This document shows, piece after piece, positions 1 through 58,600 of a DNA stretch of 64,000 nucleotides; the first letter of the stretch is position 1, and each line of letters begins with the position of its first letter. The stretch comes from Paraphysomonas bandaiensis. Its lineage: Eukaryota; Protista; Chrysophyceae. The notes below the pieces were generated by a model, which saw only the letters and a program-made list of their open reading frames with translations, ran no database searches and was not told the DNA's origin. The stretch lies in the NCBI GenBank assembly GCA_965644295.1, contig CBFFRP010000457.1, positions 62,001 through 126,000 on the forward strand, read 5' to 3'. Made by a program: the position numbers and the translations under genes.

Positions 1-3000
1 GAAAATCAAAATCTCTGAGCACACCGGTATATATCTTTATTATTGTCTTTGTGGAATGGTACTGTGTAGTTGTATCTATGTAATACTGTATGTGTGCAAT
101 GATGAAGATGTCTTTCGTTATGGAATGGTTGTAAAATGCATCCTCCAGATGAATATTACATGAAAATCAAAATCTCTGAGCACACCAGTATATATCTTTA
201 TTATTGTCTTTGTGGAATGGTACTATGTAGTTGTATCTATGTAATACTGTATGTGTGCAATGATGACGATGTCTTTCGTTATGGAATGGTTGTAAAATGC
301 AGCCTCCAGATGAATATTACATGAAAATCAAAATCTCTGAGCACACCAGTATATATCTTTATTATTGTCTTTGTGGAATGGTACTGTGTAGTTGTATCTA
401 TGTAATACTGTATGTGTGCAATGATGACGATGTCTTTCGTTATGGAATGGTTGTAAAATTCATCCTCCAGATGAATATTACATGAAAATCAAAATCTCTG
501 AGCACACCGGTATATATCTTTATTATTGTCTTTGTGGAATGGTACTGTGTAGTTGTATCTATGTAATACTGTATGTGTGCAATGATGACGATGTCTTTCG
601 TTATGGAATGGTTGTAAAATGCAACCTCTAGATGAATATTACATGAAAATCAAAATCTCTGAGCACACCAGTATATATCTTTATTATTGTCTTTGTGGAA
701 TGGTACTATGTAGTTGTATCTATGTAATACTGTATGTGTGCAATGATGACGATGTCTTTCGTTATGGAATGGTTGTAAAATGCAGCCTCCAGATGAATAT
801 TACATGAAAATCAAAATCTCTGAGCACACCAGTATATATCTTTATTATTGTCTTTGTGGAATGGTACTGTGTAGTTGTATCTATGTAATACTGTATGTGT
901 GCAATGATGACGATGTCTTTCGTTATGGAATGGTTGTAAAATGCATCCTCCAGATGAATATTACATGAAAATCAAAATCTCTGAGCACACCGGTATATAT
1001 CTTTATTATTGTCTTTGTGGAATGGTACTGTGTAGTTGTATCTATGTAATACTGTATGTGTGCAATGATGAAGATGTCTTTCGTTATGGAATGGTTGTAA
1101 AATGCAACCTCTAGATGAATATTACATGAAAATCAAAATCTCTGAGCACACCAGTATATATCTTTATTATTGTCTTTGTGGAATGGTACTATGTAGTTGT
1201 ATCTATGTAATACTGTATGTGTGCAATGATGACGATGTCTTTCGTTATGGAATGGTTGTAAAATGCAACCTCTAGATGAATATTACATGAAAATCAAAAT
1301 CTCTGAGCACACCAGTATATATCTTTATTATTGTCTTTGTGGAATGGTACTATGTAGTTGTATCTATGTAATACTGTATGTGTGCAATGATGACGATGTC
1401 TTTCGTTATGGAATGGTTGTAAAATGCAGCCTCCAGATGAATATTACATGAAAATCAAAATCTCTGAGCACACCAGTATATATCTTTATTATTGTCTTTG
1501 TGGAATGGTACTGTGTAGTTGTATCTATGTAATACTGTATGTGTGCAATGATGACGATGTCTTTCGTTATGGAATGGTTGTAAAATGCATCCTCCAGATG
1601 AATATTACATGAAAATCAAAATCTCTGAGCACACCGGTATATATCTTTATTATTGTCTTTGTGGAATGGTACTGTGTAGTTGTATCTATGTAATACTGTA
1701 TGTGTGCAATGATGAAGATGTCTTTCGTTATGGAATGGTTGTAAAATGCAACCTCTAGATGAATATTACATGAAAATCAAAATCTCTGAGCACACCAGTA
1801 TATATCTTTATTATTGTCTTTGTGGAATGGTACTATGTAGTTGTATCTATGTAATACTGTATGTGTGCAATGATGACGATGTCTTTCGTTATGGAATGGT
1901 TGTAAAATGCAGCCTCCAGATGAATATTACATGAAAATCAAAATCTCTGAGCACACCAGTATATATCTTTATTATTGTCTTTGTGGAATGGTACTGTGTA
2001 GTTGTATCTATGTAATACTGTATGTGTGCAATGATGACGATGTCTTTCGTTATGGAATGGTTGTAAAATGCATCCTCCAGATGAATATTACATGAAAATC
2101 AAAATCTCTGAGCACACCAGTATATATCTTTATTATTGTCTTTGTGGAATGGTACTGTGTAGTTGTATCTATGTAATACTGTATGTGTGCAATGATGACG
2201 ATGTCTTTCGTTATGGAATGGTTGTAAAATGCAGCCTCCAGATGAATATTACATGAAAATCAAAATCTCTGAGCACACCAGTATATATCTTTATTATTGT
2301 CTTTGTGGAATGGTACTGTGTAGTTGTATCTATGTAATACTGTATGTGTGCAATGATGAAGATGTCTTTCGTTATGGAATGGTTGTAAAATGCAGCCTCC
2401 AGATGAATATTACATGAAAATCAAAATCTCTGAGCACACCAGTATATATCTTTATTATTGTCTTTGTGGAATGGTACTGTGTAGTTGTATCTATGTAATA
2501 CTGTATGTGTGCAATGATGACGATGTCTTTCGTTATGGAATGGTTGTAAAATGCATCCTCCAGATGAATATTACATGAAAATCAAAATCTCTGAGCACAC
2601 CAGTATATATCTTTATTATTGTCTTTGTGGAATGGTACTATGTAGTTGTATCTATGTAATACTGTGTGCAATGATGACGATGTCTTTCGTTATGGAATGG
2701 TTGTAAAATGCATCCTCCAGATGAATATTACATGAAAATCAAAATCTCTGAGCACACCAGTATATATCTTTATTATTGTCTTTGTGGAATGGTACTGTGT
2801 AGTTGTATCTATGTAATACTGTATGTGTGCAATGATGACGATGTCTTTCGTTATGGAATGGTTGTAAAATTCATCCTCCAGATGAATATTACATGAAAAT
2901 CAAAATCTCTGAGCACACCGGTATATATCTTTATTATTGTCTTTGTGGAATGGTACTGTGTAGTTGTATCTATGTAATACTGTATGTGTGCAATGATGAA

Positions 3001-4816
3001 GATGTCTTTCGTTATGGAATGGTTGTAAAATGCAACCTCTAGATGAATATTACATGAAAATCAAAATCTCTGAGCACACCAGTATATATCTTTATTATTG
3101 TCTTTGTGGAATGGTACTATGTAGTTGTATCTATGTAATACTGTATGTGTGCAATGATGACGATGTCTTTCGTTATGGAATGGTTGTAAAATGCATCCTC
3201 CAGATGAATATTACATGAAAATCAAAATCTCTGAGCACACCAGTATATATCTTTATTATTGTCTTTGTGGAATGGTACTATGTAGTTGTATCTATGTAAT
3301 ACTGTATGTGTGCAATGATGACGATGTCTTTCGTTATGGAATGGTTGTAAAATGCAGCCTCCAGATGAATATTACATGAAAATCAAAATCTCTGAGCACA
3401 CCAGTATATATCTTTATTATTGTCTTTGTGGAATGGTACTGTGTAGTTGTATCTATGTAATACTGTATGTGTGCAATGATGACGATGTCTTTCGTTATGG
3501 AATGGTTGTAAAATGCATCCTCCAGATGAATATTACATGAAAATCAAAATCTCTGAGCACACCGGTATATATCTTTATTATTGTCTTTGTGGAATGGTAC
3601 TGTGTAGTTGTATCTATGTAATACTGTATGTGTGCAATGATGAAGATGTCTTTCGTTATGGAATGGTTGTAAAATGCAACCTCTAGATGAATATTACATG
3701 AAAATCAAAATCTCTGAGCACACCAGTATATATCTTTATTATTGTCTTTGTGGAATGGTACTATGTAGTTGTATCTATGTAATACTGTATGTGTGCAATG
3801 ATGACGATGTCTTTCGTTATGGAATGGTTGTAAAATGCAGCCTCCAGATGAATATTACATGAAAATCAAAATCTCTGAGCACACCAGTATATATATTTAT
3901 TATTGTCTTTGTGGAATGGTACTGTGTAGTTGTATCTATGTAATACTGTATGTGTGCAATGATGACGATGTCTTTCGTTATGGAATGGTTGTAAAATGCA
4001 TCCTCCAGATGAATATTACATGAAAATCAAAATCTCTGAGCACACCAGTATATATCTTTATTATTGTCTTTGTGGAATGGTACTGTGTAGTTGTATCTAT
4101 GTAATACTGTATGTGTGCAATGATGACGATGTCTTTCGTTATGGAATGGTTGTAAAATGCAGCCTCCAGATGAATATTACATGAAAATCAAAATCTCTGA
4201 GCACACCAGTATATATCTTTATTATTGTCTTTGTGGAATGGTACTGTGTAGTTGTATCTATGTAATACTGTATGTGTGCAATGATGAAGATGTCTTTCGT
4301 TATGGAATGGTTGTAAAATGCAGCCTCCAGATGAATATTACATGAAAATCAAAATCTCTGAGCACACCAGTATATATCTTTATTATTGTCTTTGTGGAAT
4401 GGTACTGTGTAGTTGTATCTATGTAATACTGTATGTGTGCAATGATGACGATGTCTTTCGTTATGGAATGGTTGTAAAATGCATCCTCCAGATGAATATT
4501 ACATGAAAATCAAAATCTCTGAGCACACCAGTATATATCTTTATTATTGTCTTTGTGGAATGGTACTATGTAGTTGTATCTATGTAATACTGTATGTGTG
4601 CAATGATGACGATGTCTTTCGTTATGGAATGGTTGTAAAATGCATCCTCCAGATGAATATTACATGAAAATCAAAATCTCTGAGCACACCAGTATATATC
4701 TTTATTATTGTCTTTGTGGAATGGTACTGTGTAGTTGTATCTATGTAATACTGTATGTGTGCAATGATGACGATGTCTTTCGTTATGGAATGGTTGTAAA
4801 ATGCATCCTCCAGATG
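1..4816. repeat. 161-bp tandem satellite array (~30 units, truncated by window start)
   Basis: Near-identical 161-bp units recur (ORF-track starts 136, 297, 619, 780...); only a few variable sites and one 4-bp deletion near 2665. Confidence 0.98.
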
Positions 4817-25140: not shown

Positions 25141-27058
25141 GTGCACAGGTGATGTGGGGTAGGATAGTCTTCTCACAACACTCTTCACTTAACTTCCTCT
25201 TCTTACTCTTTACTTCGCTACTTCTTAACTTTCAACTCAACTACGATATCAACTTTCACTATTATATCTAAAACTCCATATCCTTCTACCTATATCCCCA
25301 CAGTTAATTCAAGAAGCGGTTTCCCAGCCATAAATAGCTAGTTTTCTACTTCCAGAAATAATCATATAAAAATCCCTTAACATCATACTCCTATATCATC
25401 CTACAGAATACCTACGTATACCATCATAATACTGTACGGGTTACCATGAACGTCCGTTACATCCGTATATACGGATAGTCACGGTACACTCCAACCCTAT
25501 ATCTGGCCTTAATACTCGTATCTTCTAATCTAATCATAACTACCATCTACATCTCATCTCATACTACAACCTACATCACTTCATCTTATTCTTCAGCCAT
25601 AACAACCTCCTAAATCACCCATACTTGTCATACCCAATTTTGCTACAGTTTCGAACTCCTGTAAGGCTTGGAATCATTAGCAAGAGGAGCTTTGATAGTC
25701 CTAAACGATTTGGATGGCAATCGATTATCAACTTCTGAAGTAGAGGGAATCGTGCCTAACAATTCAGGCACGTCTGCAAACATATTTTTACTCTGAAAAC
25801 AGCAGGCTAACGGGAGACTTCTCTGTAGAAATGATATCTCAGCAGTACCTCGGTCACTCAAAATAGTATTCCGTGGATCATTGAGAACGATCCCAGCTTC
25901 TATCATAGCTGCATTCAAAATTTCTATGTCGTCTCTACATTCAGCAAATGTTAATGCAAACCCACATACTACCAAATGTGATTATCAAGGGTTCGTCCAC
26001 TCACAACCGTTAAAAACATTGGTCGTATAATGATATCGCACTGTAGGGAATTCTTCTTCATATGAGAAACATCAAGACCAAATATGCGCCTCAGGTACTC
26101 GTGTTCAATGCAATTCTTGACGTATGGAAAACAAATGCTAAACTCCTCCGTGATGTCGTTACGGCGAAGTTAGTAACGAGTACCGGGATTTTGTTCTTTG
26201 AACAGCTCTAGAAATGGCTCCAGCAATGAAAAACTGCCCAACTGGTCTTCTAGTTGAATTCGACTGAGTGCCGCAGCTTTCTTAACCACATCGGGCTTGG
26301 CATTTATGCCATCAACCAACAGAAGTTGCTAGTTATAAGAGCATATATATATTATACATTGCGATATATCTTTGTGTCGACTCATATATTTGTGTATTCA
26401 GTGGTGCGAACAGAAACATAGGTATACTAATTCTCACGCCCATCCATATCATAAGATTTACATACAAAATTACAGTAGTAAATGCCTTGCTTCACATGAA
26501 CATTATAGTTCGTATATGATGGTAGTGATGTGTGTGTTTCTCACCTGAATGCGGGTAGTGCTACTATTACGACGATCAACTCCAACATCCTTCATGATCA
26601 CTGAAAACTTTTCATTTTTTCAACACCTCGTTCTAAAAGTACTAAATAATGAAGAGTTTATACATATATATATACCTGTGATGCTTATCCGAAGACGTCA
26701 CAAGGAATTCTCACACCATCCTCGCTCAACACATAGCGCTCCTTAATACTTGCAGCAGTAGTCCATCTAGTCTGTTCTATCACGCTTTTACGCCGAGCAC
26801 ATGATGGAGTCATACATATCATTGTAACTCTATTGCTTCCTTGAGCTACATGGTGGATCGCGTCGCAGTTGTTTTCCTGTACGTGTGCCTCCATAACTGA
26901 CTATCTGTTGCATGTGATTCATGACAGATTGATAGTCTGGAAACACTTGATCTTCTTCTGTGAGTTCCATCACGTGCATAGGTAATAGAATGTCTCATCA
27001 TAGTCAATACAGGATCACAATACATCACTAAATAAGTGGATACATATGACTGGATTAA

Positions 27059-27210
27059 CGTATCGGCATTCAGCATCTTAGTTTTCGGAAATAAATTGAA
27101 TCAAAAATGCGTATACATTAATGAACACTAACTACGGCTAGAATACAGATAATTGTTGACTCAATCTTAGAGGCATCTTGGAACAAAAATACACAAAGGA
27201 TGCCGATACG
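27059..27210 (+). mobile_element. ~150-bp MITE (copy 2), inside the MULE subterminal region
   Basis: CGTATCGGCAT...ATGCCGATACG terminal inverted repeats. Confidence 0.78.
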
Positions 27211-27382
27211 AAGATCGATGTACTGTATGTAATACGTATACGGTATACGTTAGCTAGCCTGCATATCTGCTGAGTGTGCTGTATGCATGTTGGTGTATGC
27301 TGTAAAGAAAATGATCAGAAAACCCCCCAAAAATGCAAAAAAAAACTCCAATGTGTCCATCCACCAAAAAAAAAACCGGACC

Positions 27383-28008
27383 GTATGTATGTATGTATGT
27401 ATGTATGTATGTATGTATGTATGTATGTATGTATGTATGTATGTATGTATGTATGTATGTATGTATGTATGTATGTATGTATGTATGTATGTATGTATGT
27501 ATGTATGTATGTATGTATGCATGTATGTATGTATGTATGTATGTATGTATGTATGTATGTATGCATGTATGTATGTATGTATGTATGTATGTATGTATGT
27601 ATGTATGTATGTATGTATGTATGTATGTATGTATGTATGTATGTATGTATGTATGTATGTATGTATGTATGTATGTATGTATGTATGTATGTATGTATGT
27701 ATGTATGTATGTATGTATGTATGTATGTATGTATGTATGTATGTATGTATGTATGTATGTATGTATGTATGTATGTATGTATGTATGTATGTATGTATGT
27801 ATGTATGTATGTATGTATGTATGTATGTATGTATGTATGTATGTATGTATGTATGTATGTATGTATGTATGTATGTATGTATGTATGTATGTATGTATGT
27901 ATGTATGTATGTATGTATGTATGTATGTATGTATGTATGTATGTATGTATGTATGTATGTATGTATGTATGTATGTATGTATGTATGTATGTATGTATGT
28001 ATGTATGT
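27383..28008 (+). repeat. (TATG)n microsatellite, ~625 bp
   Basis: Direct reading; two TGCA variant units. Confidence 0.99.
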
Positions 28009-28107
28009 GTATGGTGTGGAGGGTGTGTCTATATATATATGTATGTATGTATGGTGTATTAAGGGTCTGTTAAGTGTATTGTATCTGTCTCTTCGTATTA
28101 ATTCATC

Positions 28108-35179: not shown

Positions 35180-35566
35180 TCATCCATCAATATCATGTGC
35201 ATTACAATAATCAGACCAACTATCAAATCCTTGATACATTCCATTCTCAGACCAACCCGAGTGACGACTCATTATAGGATCTCTGTATGGTGTATCCTCC
35301 GATGAATCATCTCCATTAAGATCATCAAGTTCTCTTCTTTCATTTAGCATATTCATATACAATTTTTTCCATTGTTTAGCATCTTTTAATAATGAAGAGA
35401 ATTCGTTGTGATTCTTGATATGATCAATCAGTTGCTGATGCTCCTCTGAGTGGAAGAGTCTCATCAGTTCATTGATCTGAACACCAGCAGCTCTTAGATC
35501 TTCAATCTTTTTACGTAATTGATTAGATGAATGAGAATATGCACGACAAGCAGCAGGATATGACAT
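35180..35566 (-). CDS. Hypothetical protein (128 aa)
   Basis: ATG-initiated ORF with natural composition, coiled-coil-like N-half, ends DSWSDYCNAHDIDG. Confidence 0.6.
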   Translation of the reverse strand: MSYPAACRAYSHSSNQLRKKIEDLRAAGVQINELMRLFHSEEHQQLIDHIKNHNEFSSLLKDAKQWKKLYMNMLNERRELDDLNGDDSSEDTPYRDPIMSRHSGWSENGMYQGFDSWSDYCNAHDIDG

Positions 35567-35821: not shown

Positions 35822-36540
35822 ATGTATGTATGTATGTATGTATGTATGTATGTATGTATGTATGTATGTATGTATGTATGTATGTATGTATGTATGTATG
35901 TATGTATGTATGTATGTATGTATGTATGTATGTATGTATGTATGTATGTATGTATGTATGTATGTATGTATGTATGTATGTATGTATGTATGTATGTATG
36001 TATGTATGTATGTATGTATGTATGTATGTATGTATGTATGTATGTATGTATGTATGTATGTATGTATGTATGTATGTATGTATGTATGTATGTATGTATG
36101 TATGTATGTATGTATGTATGTATGTATGTATGTATGTATGTATGTATGTATGTATGTATGTATGTATGTATGTATGTATGTATGTATGTATGTATGTATG
36201 TATGTATGTATGTATGTATGTATGTATGTATGTATGTATGTATGTATGTATGTATGTATGTATGTATGTATGTATGTATGTATGTATGTATGTATGTATG
36301 TATGTATGTATGTATGTATGTATGTATGTATGTATGTATGTATGTATGTATGTATGTATGTATGTATGTATGTATGTATGTATGTATGTATGTATGTATG
36401 TATGTATGTATGTATGTATGTATGTATGTATGTATGTATGTATGTATGTATGTATGTATGTATGTATGTATGTATGTATGTATGTATGTATGTATGTATG
36501 TATGTATGTATGTATGTATGTATGTATGTATGTATGTATG

Positions 36541-36572
<32 letters not shown>

Positions 36573-37024
36573 TGTATGTATGTATGTATGTATGTATGTA
36601 TGTATGTATGTATGTATGTATGTATGTATGTATGTATGTATGTATGTATGTATGTATGTATGTATGTATGTATGTATGTATGTATGTATGTATGTATGTA
36701 TGTATGTATGTATGTATGTATGTATGTATGTATGTATGTATGTATGTATGTATGTATGTATGTATGTATGTATGTATGTATGTATGTATGTATGTATGTA
36801 TGTATGTATGTATGTATGTATGTATGTATGTATGTATGTATGTATGTATGTATGTATGTATGTATGTATGTATGTATGTATGTATGTATGTATGTATGTA
36901 TGTATGTATGTATGTATGTATGTATGTATGTATGTATGTATGTATGTATGTATGTATGTATGTATGTATGTATGTATGTATGTATGTATGTATGTATGTA
37001 TGTATGTATGTATGTATGTATGTA
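35822..37024 (+). repeat. (TATG)n microsatellite, ~1.2 kb
   Basis: Direct reading; one TATA interruption near 36541. Confidence 0.99.
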
Positions 37025-39905
37025 GAGATCAAGACACGGTTTGTGGGGGTTTTGGTGGTTTGGTGCCAGAATGGACACGTTGGAGTTTTTTTTGCTTTTT
37101 TGGGGGGTTTTCTGACATTTTCCTTTCCAACATTCAGCACACTCAGCAGATAGACAGGCTAGCTAACGTATCCATCCATACACCAATTCGATCTGTCAAT
37201 CTTAATACAGCCATATATATCCACTTATTCAGTGATGAATTGTGATCTTGAATTGACTATGATGATATTATTTTACTTATGCACGTGATGGAACTCACAG
37301 AGGAAGATCAAGTGTTTCCAGAGTTTGCAACAGATAGTCAGTTATGGAGGCACACGTACAGGAAAACAACTGCGACACGACCCACATGTAGCGCAAGGAA
37401 GAAATAGAGTTACTATGATATGTATGAATCCATCATGTGCTCTAAGATTATGTGCTTGGTGTAAGCGTCATAAAACATACTATATGGATAGTGTGCAAGT
37501 ATTGAGGAGCACTAGGTGTTGAGCGAGGATGTTATGAGAATTCCTTGTGTCGTCTTCGGAAAAGCATCACAGGTATATATATATATATGTATAAACTTTT
37601 CATTATTCAGTACTTCAAGAACGAGGTGTTGAACAACGAAGAGTTTGCAGTGATCATGAAGGATATTGGAGTCGGTCGTCGTAATATTAGCACTACCCGC
37701 ATTCAGGCGAGAAACACACAACAGCACTTTCATGTAATATCGCACATGTAAATTGTGCAATAGTAAGCTTACTATGTTAGGCAATGTGTATAATTGCTTA
37801 CGTTCTAATATTTTATACTTGATAGGATATACAGAAAGAAGTCAGACATTGTCCAATGGAGGTTCACATTCTCGATACTGTGAGCGAGCGAGGTATTGTG
37901 CATACCATCACGTATACAGTGCATAGAAGCGAGTTGGGAAATGTGGACTTGTCTAAGCAGAAATGGGACTGTGGAAAGTACCAACAAACAGGAGATGCGT
38001 AGTTTCTGCTTAAAGAGTTGTATCCGAATGGAATGCCACAAGACCTATTTTCGGAGAAATACTTTCATAAAGAATGCTTTACTATGAGAGTAAAAAATAT
38101 GCTTGCAGACGTGCCTGAAATGTTAGGCACGATTCACTCTACTTCAGAAGTTGATAATCGATTGCGATCCAAATCGTTTAGGACTATCAAAGCTCCTCTT
38201 GCTAATGATTCCAAGTCTTACAGGAGTTCGAAACGATGGACTAGCACCGGAGAAAGTTCTAGCAGGTGTTGTTGTCATATCCGCGTCAGATATATTTATT
38301 CTTATACATTTATAATGTACAACAGTTCTACTAGTCAGGCTTTATTCAAAAAGAAAAAAAACAGTGTCCCGACTGTCACCAGTGGCTCTCGCGCAAGACC
38401 CTGCATCCCACCAGTGCATGTAGCACGTATTGTATTCGTAATGGTATCAGTCCGCCTGAGGTTTTTCTTTCCGGTTATATTGACGAGTTGAATCACCCTA
38501 ATGATATCGCTGAGCTATCAGAATCGCCTGCTGAAGAAACTGCAACACTTTTTAGTTAGAATATCTGTTGTGTATTCCATATATTTTATGGCCGCATGTA
38601 TATTATCGTTTAGTTGGACAATTACATATCTTTAATTTTAAAGAAATGTGTCTTTACTGTTGTTGCGTTGTTGCTCAGTGATAAAATTCATGCACGGTGT
38701 TGAGATCTGAAGATTCTATATACTTGCAATTGAGTGCAGTATTATGTGAGATGCAAGGATCGAAAGATATACTGTATATGTAATTAGTACATTATATTGT
38801 GTAGTATGAAACTGAAGTAGAAGATTAGTGACTATACAGGATACGATCACTGAGTGTGTGGTTTGTACACTATAGTAGTAAATGAATGGTGTTGAACACA
38901 TCGAATACAACTTAGGAGAATAGTAAGCCCTAGCAAATAATGTCAACTTCTAATACACGGTAGACGGTAGTGTTTAGTGTTTTACACTGTACTTGACTAG
39001 CTAGAACCTTTGACATACTACTAATAATAAATGATCACATTAACCACTGCATGTAATATTCTAGCTAGTTGAAAAAACTTTTCTAATTCTGTTATAGCTA
39101 GATACTAGATCTGATGTAAAAGAGTTTGAAAATAGTCCTTATCTACACAGTCATGAAAATTTACATGTCATACACCCTGATAATACTAAACTGAAACCAA
39201 GACTATACACACAGAAAGGGGAGGGGTCCTGGGGGCATAACAAGATTAATTTAAAAGGAATAAAACCGCTATCTTTTATTCAAAAGAATATCAGATATTA
39301 GTGTGTAGTCAAAAGAATATCAACACGCGAATTACAATATCATTAACAGAACCAGACAAATTCACTGTTAAAAAGTATACATAAAACCAACTGTATGGAA
39401 CTATTCAAGCAGTCACTAATCTACCTTCTACGAGTTACTTGTGCTCTTGCATGGAATCATAAGATTCGTTTGGCAACAAAGGCAGGGGATGTCAATCAAA
39501 GAAGATTATAGATATGTCAATATTTACTCATATATTTCTGATTCCTACACCTGTTCATCTGAAAGACTCCTATATTCGATCTCATCGGAGTATAAGAGCG
39601 GCTAGCAGGACTATGAATGCATGTTCTTCGAGATCTAGCAACTGCTCCACGTTGGCCTTCTTTAGCCCTAGCTGTGTCGATAGAGCATCGAGCTGGGTCC
39701 CTCGTCCAACTGGAAAGCCATTCACAGGGGAGTTGTGAACACTATGTACCTTCCTGTCTTCTAGATGTTGGCAGTGAGTGTGCTGAATGTTGGAAAGGAA
39801 AATGTCAGAAAACCCCCCAAAAAAGCAAAAAAACCTCCAACGTGTCCATTCTGGCACCAAACCACCAAAACCCCCACAAACCGTGTCTTGATCGGCACCG
39901 GGCTC
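37025..39905 (+). mobile_element. Non-autonomous Mutator-like element (copy 2) with ~120-bp TIRs, inserted in (TATG)n
   Basis: GAG..ATCAAGACACGGTTTGTGGGGG...TTCAGCACACTCA is the inverse of TGAGTGTGCTGAA...CCCCCACAAACCGTGTCTTGATC..CTC; internal homology to the MULE remnant at 25648-26980; flanks ATGTATGTA on both sides. Confidence 0.87.
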
Positions 39906-40580
39906 ATGTATGTATGTATGTATGTATGTATGTATGTATGTATGTATGTATGTATGTATGTATGTATGTATGTATGTATGTATGTATGTATGTATGTATG
40001 TATGTATGTATGTATGTATGTATGTATCTATGTATGTATGTATGTATGTATGTATGTATGTATGTATGTATGTATGTATGTATGTATGTATGTATGTATG
40101 TATGTATGTATGTATGTATGTATGTATGTATGTATGTATGTATGTATGTATGTATGTATGTATGTATGTATGTATGTATGTATGTATGTATGTATGTATG
40201 TATGTATGTATGTATGTATGTATGTATGTATGTATGTATGTATGTATGTATGTATGTATGTATGTATGTATGTATGTATGTATGTATGTATGTATGTATG
40301 TATGTATGTATGTATGTATGTATGTATGTATGTATGTATGTATGTATGTATGTATGTATGTATGTATGTATGTATGTATGTATGTATGTATGTATGTATG
40401 TATGTATGTATGTATGTATGTATGTATGTATGTATGTATGTATGTATGTATGTATGTATGTATGTATGTATGTATGTATGTATGTATGTATGTATGTATG
40501 TATGTATGTATGTATGTATGTATGTATGAATGTATGTATGTATGTATGTATGTATGTATGTATGTATGTATGTATGTATG

Positions 40581-40612
<32 letters not shown>

Positions 40613-40727
40613 TGTATGTATGTATGTATGTATGTATGTATGTATGTATGTATGTATGTATGTATGTATGTATGTATGTATGTATGTATGTATGTATGTA
40701 TGTATGTATGTATGTATGTATGTATGT
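39906..40727 (+). repeat. (TATG)n microsatellite, ~820 bp
   Basis: Direct reading; a few variant units. Confidence 0.99.
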
Positions 40728-40730
40728 GTA

Positions 40731-40878
40731 TATCGGCAGTAAGCATCTTATGTTTTCGGAAATAAATTGAAGCAAATTTACTCTATATTACTGCAATAAA
40801 AGTATGGCTAGAATACAGATAATTATTGTCTCAATATTAGAGGCATCTTTGAACAAAAAATACAAAGAATGCCAATAC
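40731..40878 (+). mobile_element. ~150-bp MITE (copy 3)
   Basis: TATCGGCAG...TGCCAATAC; homologous to 27059-27210. Confidence 0.75.
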
Positions 40879-41033
40879 AGCAGCAGTATGAATTCATTCA
40901 TATGGTATGGTGTTCATGTATGTATGTGAGTTCTTCATATTATCATCTTGCTACTCTCATAACTATCCCTCATACAGTCTTCACTCTAATCACAATGTGT
41001 GAACATAATTTTATATTTACATCTATTGGTAAT

Positions 41034-41669
41034 ATGGGTATAAAGTTTTGTAATGAAAAACGATTTTATTTTATGCTTTCATGTGTTTTAACGAGTGGAT
41101 TATCTCTCATACTTTGCTCTGTGGCACTTGCTGGTGCATCTACGAATAATACAACTGTTATATCATGTAATTGGGCCTATGGAAGTAACGGAAATATTGA
41201 TTCATATATTGGTTTAAAGCGTGCTGTTACAGTCATTGATGATGATGATGTATCTGGTGAGAATTGGAAGGATATGAATTGTAATGGAGAGAATTATTGT
41301 GATGAATGTCATGATGCTGGATCTGATAGTTTATCAAGTGTAGCTCTACTTTTTATATTAAATTTTGTATGTGTTATTCAGTCTTATCTGCGTGTTACTG
41401 CTGCGAGAGATATGAATACACACAAAGTGGTGCAGCTATTTTGCACAGGCTTTAGTGTGTTACTGGCAATCATTTCTATCGGTTCATTTTCAAATGAATG
41501 TATCAATAATTTACCAGACGAGTTTGACTATGTCCATGGACCGGGGTATGGCTGCGTTGCGACCGTGTTGGTGTTCAAAATCATTGAATTCTTGTTCCAT
41601 TTATGTGTACCTGTGGAACAGAAGCACGCTCATGAGCCGGTGGCTTCTGTGTTTTCGAACAGGAATTAA
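41034..41669 (+). CDS. Four-TM protein, amastin/claudin-like topology
   Basis: TM1, W..YIGL and Cys-rich first loop (CNGENYCDEC), three more TMs, GPGYGC before TM4; start codon uncertain (40995 or 41034). Confidence 0.75.
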   Translation: MGIKFCNEKRFYFMLSCVLTSGLSLILCSVALAGASTNNTTVISCNWAYGSNGNIDSYIGLKRAVTVIDDDDVSGENWKDMNCNGENYCDECHDAGSDSLSSVALLFILNFVCVIQSYLRVTAARDMNTHKVVQLFCTGFSVLLAIISIGSFSNECINNLPDEFDYVHGPGYGCVATVLVFKIIEFLFHLCVPVEQKHAHEPVASVFSNRN

Positions 41670-53798: not shown

Positions 53799-55132
53799 TA
53801 CTGATTAGTTACAGGTAGAGGTCTAACTAGTTTATCTAGCATTCATCTAGCTACTAAGTTGGTGCAGGTTTTTAACGCCTATTGCTAATAATAAGACTTT
53901 CAATACACATAGCTACATCATTACACTAATTCAGTCAGTATTGTGCTACTGCAAGTATAATTTAATAGTTAAGTCCGAGGATAAAAAGTTGATGTGTAAA
54001 TATCTGTTGGAATACGTACTATTGTTCTCTAAGATAGTACTGTAGAATACGTTAAATGCAATGTAAAAAACAGTAATACGTAGTCAATAGTCAAAGATGC
54101 TATATAGCTATAACAGTGAAACTGAAGTATTATATCATGACAATTTAAGATACGGAAGTTGAGTAGTGGTTGACATGAACGATATAATTTATCATGTTGT
54201 TGACATGTGTTACATGAAAACACATACAATTATAATAATATAATCTATCTAGTTTGATTAACTTTAACTTCTCTTAAAACGATCTTCATTGTCTGAAAAT
54301 GGTCAATAGTCAATAATATCAACGTATCAACCAGAACTTGCCATCTGGTTATTTTGTCCTATGATTTCTATATTGTATATGCTTATGCTATCAAGGTTTG
54401 ACATCAGGGTGGTAAAAACTTAAATTTTCACCACTACCACTCAATATTATTAGATCTCAGGTAGACACGATCTTTACAGTCAAAGCTTTTCATGTCATGA
54501 GTTCATGTTAACCACTACTATATTCTTCAAGTAACGGTCATAATTCGAATACTTTATAAAAACAGCTTTTAATGTCTTCCAAACCGTAAAACTCAACACT
54601 CCCTCTAAATTCATATCTGTAGATAGAATTCATATCACGAGACATAACTGACGGATACGGAACCACCAAAACTATCTAAGATAAACTGGTGGATGTATGA
54701 GACATCGATATGTCAGCTAGTGAGACACTACGATGTTTAGGTTTGAGTCATTCAACTCAATCATATCTCCATGTTCCTGATGTACTTCTCATTAGTACAA
54801 TCAACCACAGGTGGGTTATTCTCCTTCGTTGTACTTTGATTCATTAGACTGTGAACGTCAACCTCTAGACTCTATCATACTATCTACATGCATGCAACAT
54901 CCAGTAGATATCTACGTATGATTCCATAGCTAACGGAATGACCATCATTATCAAACATGTCATGGAGATATCGAGGATCTAGTAGTCCATATATATAGTG
55001 GAGTATGCAGCAGTGTGAGCGAGGTGATGTAGTCTGGATGTGTATAGATATATACACCAGTATATACGGACTGCTGGAGATACTGCTGTGCGGTATGAGA
55101 GCTTTGATTGGTGTACCTGTGTACTTTGATTT

Positions 55133-55560
55133 ACATACATAGGTACGTACGTACATACATACATACATACATACATACATACATACATACATACATACAT
55201 ACATACATAGATACATACATATACACATACATACATACATACATACATACATACATACATACATACATACATACATACATACATACATACATACATACAT
55301 ACATACATACATACATACATACATACATACATACATACATACATACATACATACATACATACATACATACATACATACATACATACATACATACATACAT
55401 ACATACATACATACATACATACATACATACATACATACATACATACATACATGTACATAAGTACATACATAAGTACCTACATACATACATGTACATAAGT
55501 ACCTACCTACCTACCTACCTACCTATACATATATACATACCTACCTACCTACATACATAA
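55133..55560 (-). repeat. (CATA)n microsatellite with degenerate (CCTA)n tail
   Basis: Direct reading. Confidence 0.97.
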
Positions 55561-55638: not shown

Positions 55639-58600
55639 ATGTATGGTACTGTAGATGGTAGTGTTCTCAAGGGGGTGGATGCGTCTCTCTGCCTCATTGT
55701 GTTAGTAGAACTAACTGATCCCATCCATACCATACAAAACCAACCCATGAGCGGTGTCAAACTCTCCGCTAAATGGCAATTAGATGCGGCCTTATTATCT
55801 CGTCCTGTTGATCTGACTTCTTTAGTGAGTTTGTCTCGATCTCATCCGCAAAAGTTCACTGAAGACGATACGATTCATCGGCTTGTATCCAACTTATTAA
55901 ATGAGAAGAATCTATCCAAATCTGATAAGGTGATTGTATTCATTGGATTCAGTGGGATTGATATGTGTATATGTGTATGTGTATATAGCTGGGTATGTAT
56001 AGCTGCATGTGTATGTGTATAGCTGCATGTGTGTATGTATATAGCTGGGTATGTATAGCTGCATGCGTATGTGTATAGCTGCATGTGTATGTATATAGCT
56101 GGGTATGTATAGCTGCATGCGTATGTGTATAGCTGCATGTGTATATGTGTATAGCTGCATGTGTGTATGTGTATAGCTGCATGTGTATATGTGTATAGCT
56201 GGATATGTATAGCTGCATGTGTGTATATAGATATGTACATGTGTATGTGTATAGCTGGATATGTATAACTGCATGTGTGTATATAGATATGTACATGTGT
56301 ATGTGTATAGCTGGATATGTATAGCTGCATGTGTGTATGTGTATAGCTGCATGTATGTATGTGTATAGCTGCATGTGTGTATGTGTATAGCTGCTTGTAT
56401 GTATGTGTATAGCTGCATGTGTATATGTGTATAGCTGCATGTGTGTATGTGTATAGCTGCATATGTATGTATATAGCTGGGTATGTATAGCTGCATGCGT
56501 ATGTGTATAGCTGCATGTGTATATGTGTGTATATACACATGTACATGTGTATAGCTGGATATGTAATGCTGCATGTGTGTTTATAGATATGTACATGTGT
56601 ATGTGTATAGCTGGATATGTATAGCTGCATGTGTGTATATGTACATGTGTATGTGTATAGCTGGATATGTATAGCTGCATGTGTGTATATACACATGTAC
56701 ATGTGTATGTGTATAGCTGGATATGTATAGCTGCATGTGTGTATATAGATATGTACATGTGTATGTCTATATATGTATAGCTGCATGTGCATATATACTA
56801 TGCTGCATAGATGTATGTGTATATATATAACTGTAATGGGTATATGTAACTATATGTATGTATAGATATAACTATATGTTTTTATAGATTAGGATCGACT
56901 CTATGTATATATGGTTATGTATAGAGTATAAGTATATATATCTCTATGTATTGCTATAAAATGTATGTATGGCTATATCTTCTGTGTATATGTGTGGAGT
57001 GATATGTATTTATATGTTACTATTTCTATTTGTTTGACTGTTTTCTAACAGGATACGAAACTAGATGTGTTAAATATTCTCGCTAATGTGGCGGGGGGCG
57101 ATAAGACAGCCAAAGCTGAGGTCAGAGTTGCTTTGGGGGGTATCAGTGAGTGGTTCGATGAGTATATTGCCACAGAGGAGGCAGACCCTACCATTGTACG
57201 TGCTCTGTATACTGCTTCGAGTAGTCTGTAACATGCCCTACACGAGGATTTATTGCATTGGTTCCTTATTCCCACTAAAGGTTTGCTGTGTGTTCAGGAG
57301 CCTGAGCTTCATAAGGCTATGGTTCTTTTGCTGGCCCGATGCTGGGACTACAAATTGAAAACGGAAGATGTTCTCGAACTTACTCAAGGAAACCGCAGGA
57401 TTGCGCTCTGCACTGTGGTAGGTTTGCTGGAGGATGGTGAGACGTATTCCACTGTATTGAAGCAACGCAAAAGGCCCACTGAAGGACAGATGGCTCAATG
57501 GGAGCATGAGCTCATCATACAGAGGTGGGATGCTGGATGTTTCTCATTGGCCTGAGATATGCGCCTGCAGGTTTGAAAAGCCTCTGCTGTTGCAGATATG
57601 CCGTCTGCTACGTGGATTCACCCATCCAGGTAATAGAATAACGCTAGAAAGTTAATATGTATAACAATCAAGTAGGTACATACTTCGAGGCTTCAACGGA
57701 AGAATTGGCGCTGTACAGGTGGGTTATTATGCATTCATGAAGTGATTATATTGGCTTGTTGAGACATACCGTTTTTGATTTACTGCATGACTTAAAATAC
57801 TTACTCTAACTGGCACTATCGTTAACAGTGTGGAGAGATTTTCAGATGAGATCAATACTCTTCTTGAGATTACCCTCCGATCCCGTTTAGTGGAGAAACT
57901 CTGTGTGGCTATGTATTCATGCATATTCGAAGACCACGCTGAAGATGATGGAATAGAGGTAAAAACGAATCGCTACAAGCGTGCGTCTTGTACCTTCCGC
58001 TAAATAATTGTATTTAGGATGTAGAGCAACGTGTTCTGGAAGAAACGGATCATGTTGCGGTTATGGCTGTACATGCTTTTCTTCAGGTATGTACACCGTG
58101 CTGCGAAACTCGTTTAATGACTTCTTCACAGAACCTGTACTTCTACGCATCTCATAACCACGACGAGTTCAGACGCCATATGCTGGTGGACACTCTGCTC
58201 ATTCCTAGACTAATACTACCCTATCTAAACTGCTGTACCCAGCAGGTAAATTGCAATCTTTTATCTCCACTAGAATATGTAGCCTCACTTTTTCACTCTT
58301 TTCGTTATTACTACTTTTGAGTATATATGTGTATTGACTTTGAGTACGTCTCATTCTATAGGCGATGGTTCTCAACAATAGAGCGGAGGCCTATTCTGAT
58401 GTTCTGGAGGGAGATTCCACTAGTACCCTGGCTCTAGACCATCATCCTAACCTCGTCAAGGGAATTGCAGCATCCCTTCGCACACTAATCATCGCCTCAT
58501 TTAGAGCCCCACCTACACAGTATGTAATGTCTTTATTGCGTCGGTTGAACCCTACGGCTTCAATGTTGAAAGCCTCTTCGTTCTGTCTACACCACCACCA

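Follow-up and report, generated by a model that had tools for sequence, protein, structure and literature searches.

MuTAnT, a Mutator-like element (MULE) family in Medicago truncatula, targets TA microsatellites: 204 of its 218 copies lie in perfect (TA)n, and insertion leaves a 9-nt duplication (PMC4486113). Non-autonomous MULEs are also linked to microsatellites, some of them other than TA, in guayule and rice (SaTar) and in maize (TAFT), and members that lie outside microsatellites carry normal duplications of 8-11 bp (PMC5907723). Waldo retrotransposons, which are of the kind without long terminal repeats (non-LTR), target (ACAY)n, and Micron MITEs (miniature inverted-repeat transposable elements) target (TA)n (reviewed in PMC3812793). 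Here we describe a MULE from Paraphysomonas bandaiensis. The stretch analyzed, hereafter the window, comprises 64,000 nucleotides (C457:62001-126000) of an assembly of 62.6 Mb in 669 contigs, and in it a 2,881-bp element at 37025-39905 splits a (TATG)n array into parts of 1,203 and 822 bp. Our literature search found no paper on the transposable elements or microsatellites of Paraphysomonas. An earlier, sequence-only reading of the window had known of no description of such a family in this lineage, which seems true for chrysophytes in searchable papers, and precedents from plants have been published.

The MULE family to which the element belongs is young and transcribed, and its host is a heterotrophic, bacterivorous chrysophyte that has been little studied. 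The window copy, a non-autonomous member, probably entered a (TATG)n array of ~2 kb that already existed, its family having a loose preference for TATG-like targets rather than specificity for TATG.

The element, its family and its transposase

The ends of the window element form inverted arms (37027-37145 and 39775-39893) of 119 nt that are 99% complementary. At the left junction the array ends ...ATGTATGTA and the element begins GAGATCAAG..., and at the right junction the element ends ...GGCACCGGGCTC and the array resumes with ATGTATGTAT.... The sequence-only reading had placed here a 2.9-kb element with GAG...CTC ends and terminal inverted repeats of ~120 bp, standing between (TATG)n arrays of 1.2 and 0.82 kb, with a +1 shift of the repeat phase across it. 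Its coordinates and ends are correct, Tandem Repeats Finder gives the two arrays the lengths stated above, and the junction letters confirm the phase shift.

The right terminal inverted repeat has 25 matches in the genome, and its 25-nt terminus occurs 18 times at ≤3 mismatches, compared with no occurrence of the reversed control pattern. In the family this repeat is 131 bp long, is common to both ends of seven complete copies and ends GAGCCCGGTGCC...GGCACCGGGCTC in all copies other than that of the window. Every other copy starts GAGCCCGGTGCCGATCAAG, whereas the window copy reads GAG followed directly by ATCAAG, so that 10 bp (CCCGGTGCCG) just after GAG have been lost from its left tip.

The copies, named here by their contigs, form two subfamilies. 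Within subfamily A (3.8 kb), C254 and C69 are 100% identical and C269 matches them at 99.97%; the identical pair C551 and C463 is 98.8% identical to the rest, and C463 carries an additional Copia-type insertion of 2 kb. Subfamily B (2.9 kb) includes the window copy and C260, which are 99.5% identical, as well as C182 and C225, and differs from subfamily A by the absence of positions 715-1905, which are the catalytic exon. DNA identity between the window copy and subfamily A is 87-93%, or about 91%. The subfamily B copies except C225 contain a 265-bp solo Copia long terminal repeat (LTR), common to the window copy, C260 and C182; because C260 and C182 have it in common, it would have been gained before subfamily B spread. 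We infer that the order of events was internal deletion, spread, LTR gain and further spread. The near-identity of the copies (99.5-100%) indicates recent activity.

A second, divergent MULE lineage is present at C15:90536-91333, with a transposase 51% identical to that of the family. The terminus at C551:59801 belongs to a different element (L050 1400-1532, which is C551:59700-59832, at the contig end) in which only the last ~27 bp (...CCGTGTCTTGATCGGCACCGGGTTC) are shared, and it was excluded from the count. The far edge of the TATG array in C551 has sequence like the interior of that element, and the element may be a MITE derivative of the MULE family.

Membership of the family in the Mutator superfamily is established. 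In an alignment of 12 transposase sequences D220, D292, C313xxH316 and E391 are invariant, together with the CxC...CxH of the SWIM finger and, among the relatives, C52, H82 and C94 in the putative N-terminal zinc-finger region; the aligned relatives sharing the invariant D220, D292, C313xxH316 and E391 pass the PF10551 and PF00872 cut-offs. An exhaustive phmmer search returned 291 relatives, and most of the ten full-length ones that were scanned (25-35% identical to the query) have PF10551 and/or PF04434 above the cut-off, with PF00872 in one. For the family transposase itself the searches used its exons, with P0002, P0152 and P0158, natural proteins derived from transcripts, taking the place of a joined gene model. 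In Pfam the SWIM finger PF04434 of an intact exon scored 21.0 bits against a cut-off of 19.6, the MULE domain PF10551 gave E = 0.02-0.04, below the cut-off, and the N-terminal DBD_Tnp_Mut PF03108, a weak hint in the intact version of exon 1, gave E = 0.078, also below it. The three matches fall in canonical order along the transposase. In the ESM Atlas, the ten best matches with a Pfam family were all MULE- or SWIM-related clusters (top score 0.94). The Mutator-like assignment that had been made from the letters of the window is thus upheld by the Asp-Asp-Glu (DDE) triad, the CxxH motif, the SWIM finger, the long inverted repeats and the 10-bp target duplications.

All transposase exons are open in C254, C69 and C269, which are candidate autonomous copies of the kind that the sequence-only reading had advised looking for; C551 and C463 have a TAG within the catalytic exon. 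Proteins derived from transcripts of Paraphysomonas MMETSP1103 (taxid 36769) agree at 99% with the genomic exons and show how these are spliced, and the MULE family is therefore expressed. The window copy encodes broken transposase remnants only, its DDE catalytic exon being gone and its SWIM motif reading QQTGDA-stop where intact copies have QQTGLPCK. A Pfam search of its own remnants gave no match, and its identification as a MULE follows from DNA homology to subfamily A.

Insertion sites and the abundance of (TATG)n arrays

Counting insertions that are independent and have one or both termini readable, our census of the genome comprises 13 events. Pure TATG arrays adjoin three of them, namely the window copy, C551 (~690 bp of array to one side and 26 bp to the other, 10-bp duplication intact) and a second copy in the window (25648-27360), whose degenerate terminus stops within ~6 bp of a (GTAT)n array. 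C269 lies within a (TACC)n tract, ~55 bp from a CATA array, and C69 within a CATA-like minisatellite; the remaining eight insertions are in unrelated sequence. When near-array and TATG-like minisatellite sites are included, the count becomes 5/13. A genome search with the terminal inverted repeat and a tabulation of flanks had both been suggested as checks on the original proposal.

The repeat is abundant in this genome. Matches to (ATGT)10 number 127,500 and matches to (ATGT)11 number 123,970; the difference between the two counts implies 3,530 perfect runs with 10 units or more, which average 45 units (180 bp) and add up to 637 kb, or 1.02% of the genome. At a 1% background, three array insertions among 13 have P = 2.7e-4, and two among 12, without the index case, have P = 6.2e-3, corresponding to a TATG bias of ~20-fold over the genome average in small numbers. 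As controls we used two other groups of elements: none of ~25 outer flanks of Copia LTRs lay in a TATG array, with no array in the 80 kb around them (Fisher P = 0.034), and 3 of 100 sampled flanks of MITE-A, an unrelated non-coding MITE, were clear TATG arrays (Fisher P = 0.02).

The target duplications carry a similar signal. Six other copies have both ends, and in each of them the duplication measures 10 bp (unambiguously in four): CTGAATATGT in C254, ACATATACAG in C69, TACCTACCTA in C269, TAGGAAATTA in C463, ATGTATGTAT in C551 and AACATCCAGC / AACATACAGC in C260, whose site is nested in the inverted repeat of an older copy. Each was scored for its best register match to (TATG)n over 10 positions, and the five outside pure arrays match at a mean of 6.6/10 positions, compared with 4.89 for background 10-mers (P = 0.0012). 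A partial bias toward TATG-like targets is likely.

The two flanks of the window copy share 9 bp (or 13) rather than 10. The sequence-only reading had taken the phase shift for the trace of a duplication of 4n+1 bases, with the 9 bp typical of Mutator in mind; the arithmetic is right, but the norm of this family, from six copies, is 10 bp. With GAG kept as the tip, the most economical account combines a single 10-bp internal deletion and a duplication of 9 bp, the alternative being a 10-bp duplication and a 1-bp change.

The history that we favor would run as follows. An internal-deletion derivative, with the Copia solo LTR already aboard, would have entered the (TATG)n array between two divergent genes, presumably moved in trans by transposase from the 3.8-kb copies, with which it has its terminal sequence in common. 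The staggered cut and gap fill-in would have duplicated 9 or 10 bp of the target, a duplication that, lying inside a 4-bp repeat, is visible as a phase shift only. Later the left tip would have lost its 10 bp, probably immobilizing the copy. The loose preference for TATG-like 10-mers would act at integration and not through retention; given that (TATG)n makes up ~1% of the genome and offers hundreds of acceptable sites, arrays would be struck well above their share.

Several observations weigh against this account. Only 13 events are available, two of which lie 10 kb apart in one TATG-rich window, and the window contains 4.6% TATG (1.6% without the locus), ~4.5-fold above the genome. The regional background was taken from the window and the 80 kb of Copia-flanking loci; if the local TATG density were 5%, P would rise to 0.025, or to 0.12 without the index case. 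If borderline MITE-A flanks are counted, that control reaches 8/100 and no longer differs significantly from the MULE (P = 0.11), and for the three duplications in unique sequence alone the resemblance to TATG has P = 0.066. The +1 phase shift of the window copy matches 9 bp and not the 10 bp of its family. The array lengths come from the assembly alone, and a preference at integration is inseparable from better survival in neutral repeat DNA.

A rival view is that there is no targeting at all, insertion being random and copies in intergenic arrays persisting because they are harmless in a compact genome, or the association being a regional accident. The position of the array between two divergent gene starts would suit such a view, as would the local richness in TATG and the weak statistics that result from it. 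We nevertheless consider it unlikely, because the copies are so young that selection has had little time to sieve them, the Copia LTRs show no comparable association with arrays, and the target duplications resemble TATG even outside arrays. The opposite proposal, made in the sequence-only reading, is that of a (TATG)n-specific family whose transposase recognizes the microsatellite as that of MuTAnT does (TA)n. All three array-adjoining copies and the TATG-like duplications elsewhere are compatible with it, but 10 of the 13 insertions lie outside TATG arrays, with ordinary 10-bp duplications of unrelated sequence such as TAGGAAATTA and CTGAATATGT, and a predominance of insertions elsewhere was what that reading had itself named as counting against it. 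In MuTAnT 204/218 copies lie in perfect (TA)n (PMC4486113), compared with 3/13 at TATG arrays here, and strict specificity is very improbable.

It had also been suggested that the unusual length of the array is linked to repair after insertion or excision, so that a short TATG seed would have been expanded by polymerase stuttering as the gap was repaired. Both flanks are indeed ~5-7 times the mean perfect run (45 units), and growth of this kind has been proposed for TAFT in maize and seen for MuTAnT. Yet the genome holds 3,530 perfect runs and only three array-associated copies of the family, so that some 3,500 arrays are without this element; the two array sides of C551 are grossly unequal despite its intact 10-bp duplication; and Tandem Repeats Finder reports element-free arrays of 430-670 bp elsewhere in the same window. 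Longer arrays are, moreover, bigger targets, and growth driven by the element is in our view improbable to a high degree. Perfect 4-bp arrays of >1 kb are difficult to assemble, and the locus could in principle be an artefact in which repeats were collapsed or expanded or the element was joined chimerically. The element, however, has both termini and a 99.5% identical twin elsewhere, the arrays contain private variants, and both unique flanks are single-copy and continuous in the assembly, all of which makes an artefact extremely unlikely. No allelic empty site is present in the assembly, which has no haplotig of either unique flank. Among these explanations, insertion of a non-autonomous MULE with a loose TATG-like preference into an existing array remains the one that we prefer.

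Features of the locus and other mobile elements

The array and the MULE together take up the whole spacer between two divergent open reading frames (ORFs), the array starting 255 bp upstream of the start codon (35566) of the minus-strand ORF. The TATG-like minisatellite farther along the window is similar to the one that hosts copy C69.

Table 1. Features of the window around the MULE, with positions counted from the first nucleotide of the window.
Feature	Position	Strand	Remarks
161-bp satellite	1-4816		29.9 copies, 98% identity; extends past window start
Second, older, truncated copy of the MULE family	25648-27360	-	MITE-A nested at 27060-27209
(GTAT)n array	27383-28053		168 units; adjoins terminus of second MULE copy
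ORF	35180-35566	-	divergent from ORF at 40869-41669
Left (ATGT/TATG)n array	35822-37024		301 units (period 4, 301.2 copies, 99% matches, Tandem Repeats Finder); perfect runs of 720 and 480 bp with a 2-bp deletion variant between
Non-autonomous MULE, subfamily B	37025-39905	+	2,881-bp deletion derivative; 99.5% identical to copy C260
Left terminal inverted repeat	37025-37145	+	GAG start, then without the 10 bp CCCGGTGCCG present in all other copies
Transposase exon 1 remnant	37279-37590	+	frameshifted; putative N-terminal zinc-finger DNA-binding region
Internal deletion junction	37720-37721		positions 715-1905 of 3.8-kb reference copy (DDE catalytic exon) gone
SWIM-finger exon and C-terminal exon remnant	37856-38491	+	premature stop in SWIM motif
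Solo LTR of Copia-type retrotransposon	38699-38963		265 bp; 5-bp ACGGT duplication
Right terminal inverted repeat	39775-39905	-	complete, 131 bp; ends ...GGCACCGGGCTC
Right (ATGT/TATG)n array	39906-40727		206 units (period 4, 206.0 copies, 99% matches, Tandem Repeats Finder)
MITE-A	40729-40880	+	unrelated; adjoins right edge of array; 5' end here GTATATCGGCAG
ORF	40869-41669	+	
(TACA)n array	55132-55559		105 units; element-free
TATG-like minisatellite	55962-56823		14/22/56-bp units; follows (TACA)n array

Other mobile elements have entered copies of the MULE family. MITE-A is about 147-150 bp long (GTATCGGCAG...TGCCGATAC), with 107 genome matches to its terminus in a pattern search, and is nested in two MULE copies: the second copy of the window and, as split halves (L026 1110-1165 and 6712-6802), C182. 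A Copia-type family with LTRs of about 255-290 bp and full elements of ~4-5 kb (271 first-look candidates) has struck the MULE family twice at different positions, in the window copy (38699-38963) and at L027 3135-5169.

The subfamily B copy C182 is interrupted by a 5.69-kb insertion (L026 1110-6802, which is C182:129560-135252). This consists of the two MITE-A halves, of MITE-B, a palindromic MITE of ~225 bp (L026 ~1213-1441) with many 98-100% identical copies in the genome, and of ~5.27 kb of single-copy, intron-less, bacterial-type DNA that lies between the MITE-A halves with MITE-B beside it. In the bacterial-type DNA lie an ORF of 806 aa that is intact and has LLTGEHAQANFNAV-like repeats, another of 212 aa, the toxin-antitoxin pair mqsR/mqsA and a fragment that was read as IS4-like and had no family match. 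MqsA shares 92% protein identity with a Legionellaceae metagenome-assembled genome (MAG) and 58-76% with other Legionellaceae, and the mqsR/mqsA pair is 87% identical at the DNA level to that MAG; a search of GTDB representative genomes gave no close relative of the 806-aa ORF. The insert is bordered at both junctions by the same MITE, and real integration is therefore favored over a chimeric join. The insert is a candidate for the integration of bacterial DNA into the genome of a bacterivorous protist, or else an assembly artefact.

Comparison with microsatellite-associated elements

The (TATG)n arrays, which often lie upstream of genes, could be preferred landing sites that the MULE transposase recognizes through a loose motif, a proposal that we hold to be more doubtful than probable. 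If it is true, this would be the first microsatellite-favoring MULE outside plants, and one with an expressed autonomous copy. A preference that is real at integration would make the family a small, tractable system for target choice by a Mutator transposase and would shed light on the way in which tracts of repeats protect a compact genome from insertions. What is known from plants is hereby extended to a further eukaryotic lineage, and no new mechanism is revealed; the preference is partial, weaker than in the plant families and directed at an unusually abundant tetranucleotide repeat, and both candidate autonomous copies and their non-autonomous partners have been identified.

With MuDR and the Mutator superfamily in general, the family has in common its long terminal inverted repeats (131 bp here), duplications of 9-10 bp, a DDE transposase that has CxxH, a SWIM finger at its C terminus and, putatively, a zinc-finger DNA-binding region at its N terminus. 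Its transposase is nevertheless divergent, with a MULE-domain score under the Pfam cut-off and ~30-35% identity to its nearest full-length relatives. Waldo and Micron resemble it as mobile elements that lie in microsatellites, and ACAT is the complement of ATGT; Waldo, however, belongs to another class, inserts by endonuclease-directed retrotransposition with strict specificity and is unrelated to the window element.

The closer parallels are with plants. As with SaTar and TAFT, other transposable elements adjoin the same arrays, here MITE-A. SaTars, however, occur in end-to-end, un-nested arrays, often without signatures of cut-and-paste transposition, whereas nesting and canonical duplications mark the copies described here, without evident expansion of their flanks. 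MuTAnT likewise combines an autonomous mudrA-like copy with shorter non-autonomous ones, a pairing that is found here too, and likewise inserts within a microsatellite, where the repeat masks the target duplication. The difference lies in degree and in host: MuTAnT is nearly exclusive to its microsatellite and duplicates 9 nt, whereas the present family has 3 of 13 insertions at arrays of a tetranucleotide, TATG, and duplicates 10 bp in the genome of a chrysophyte.

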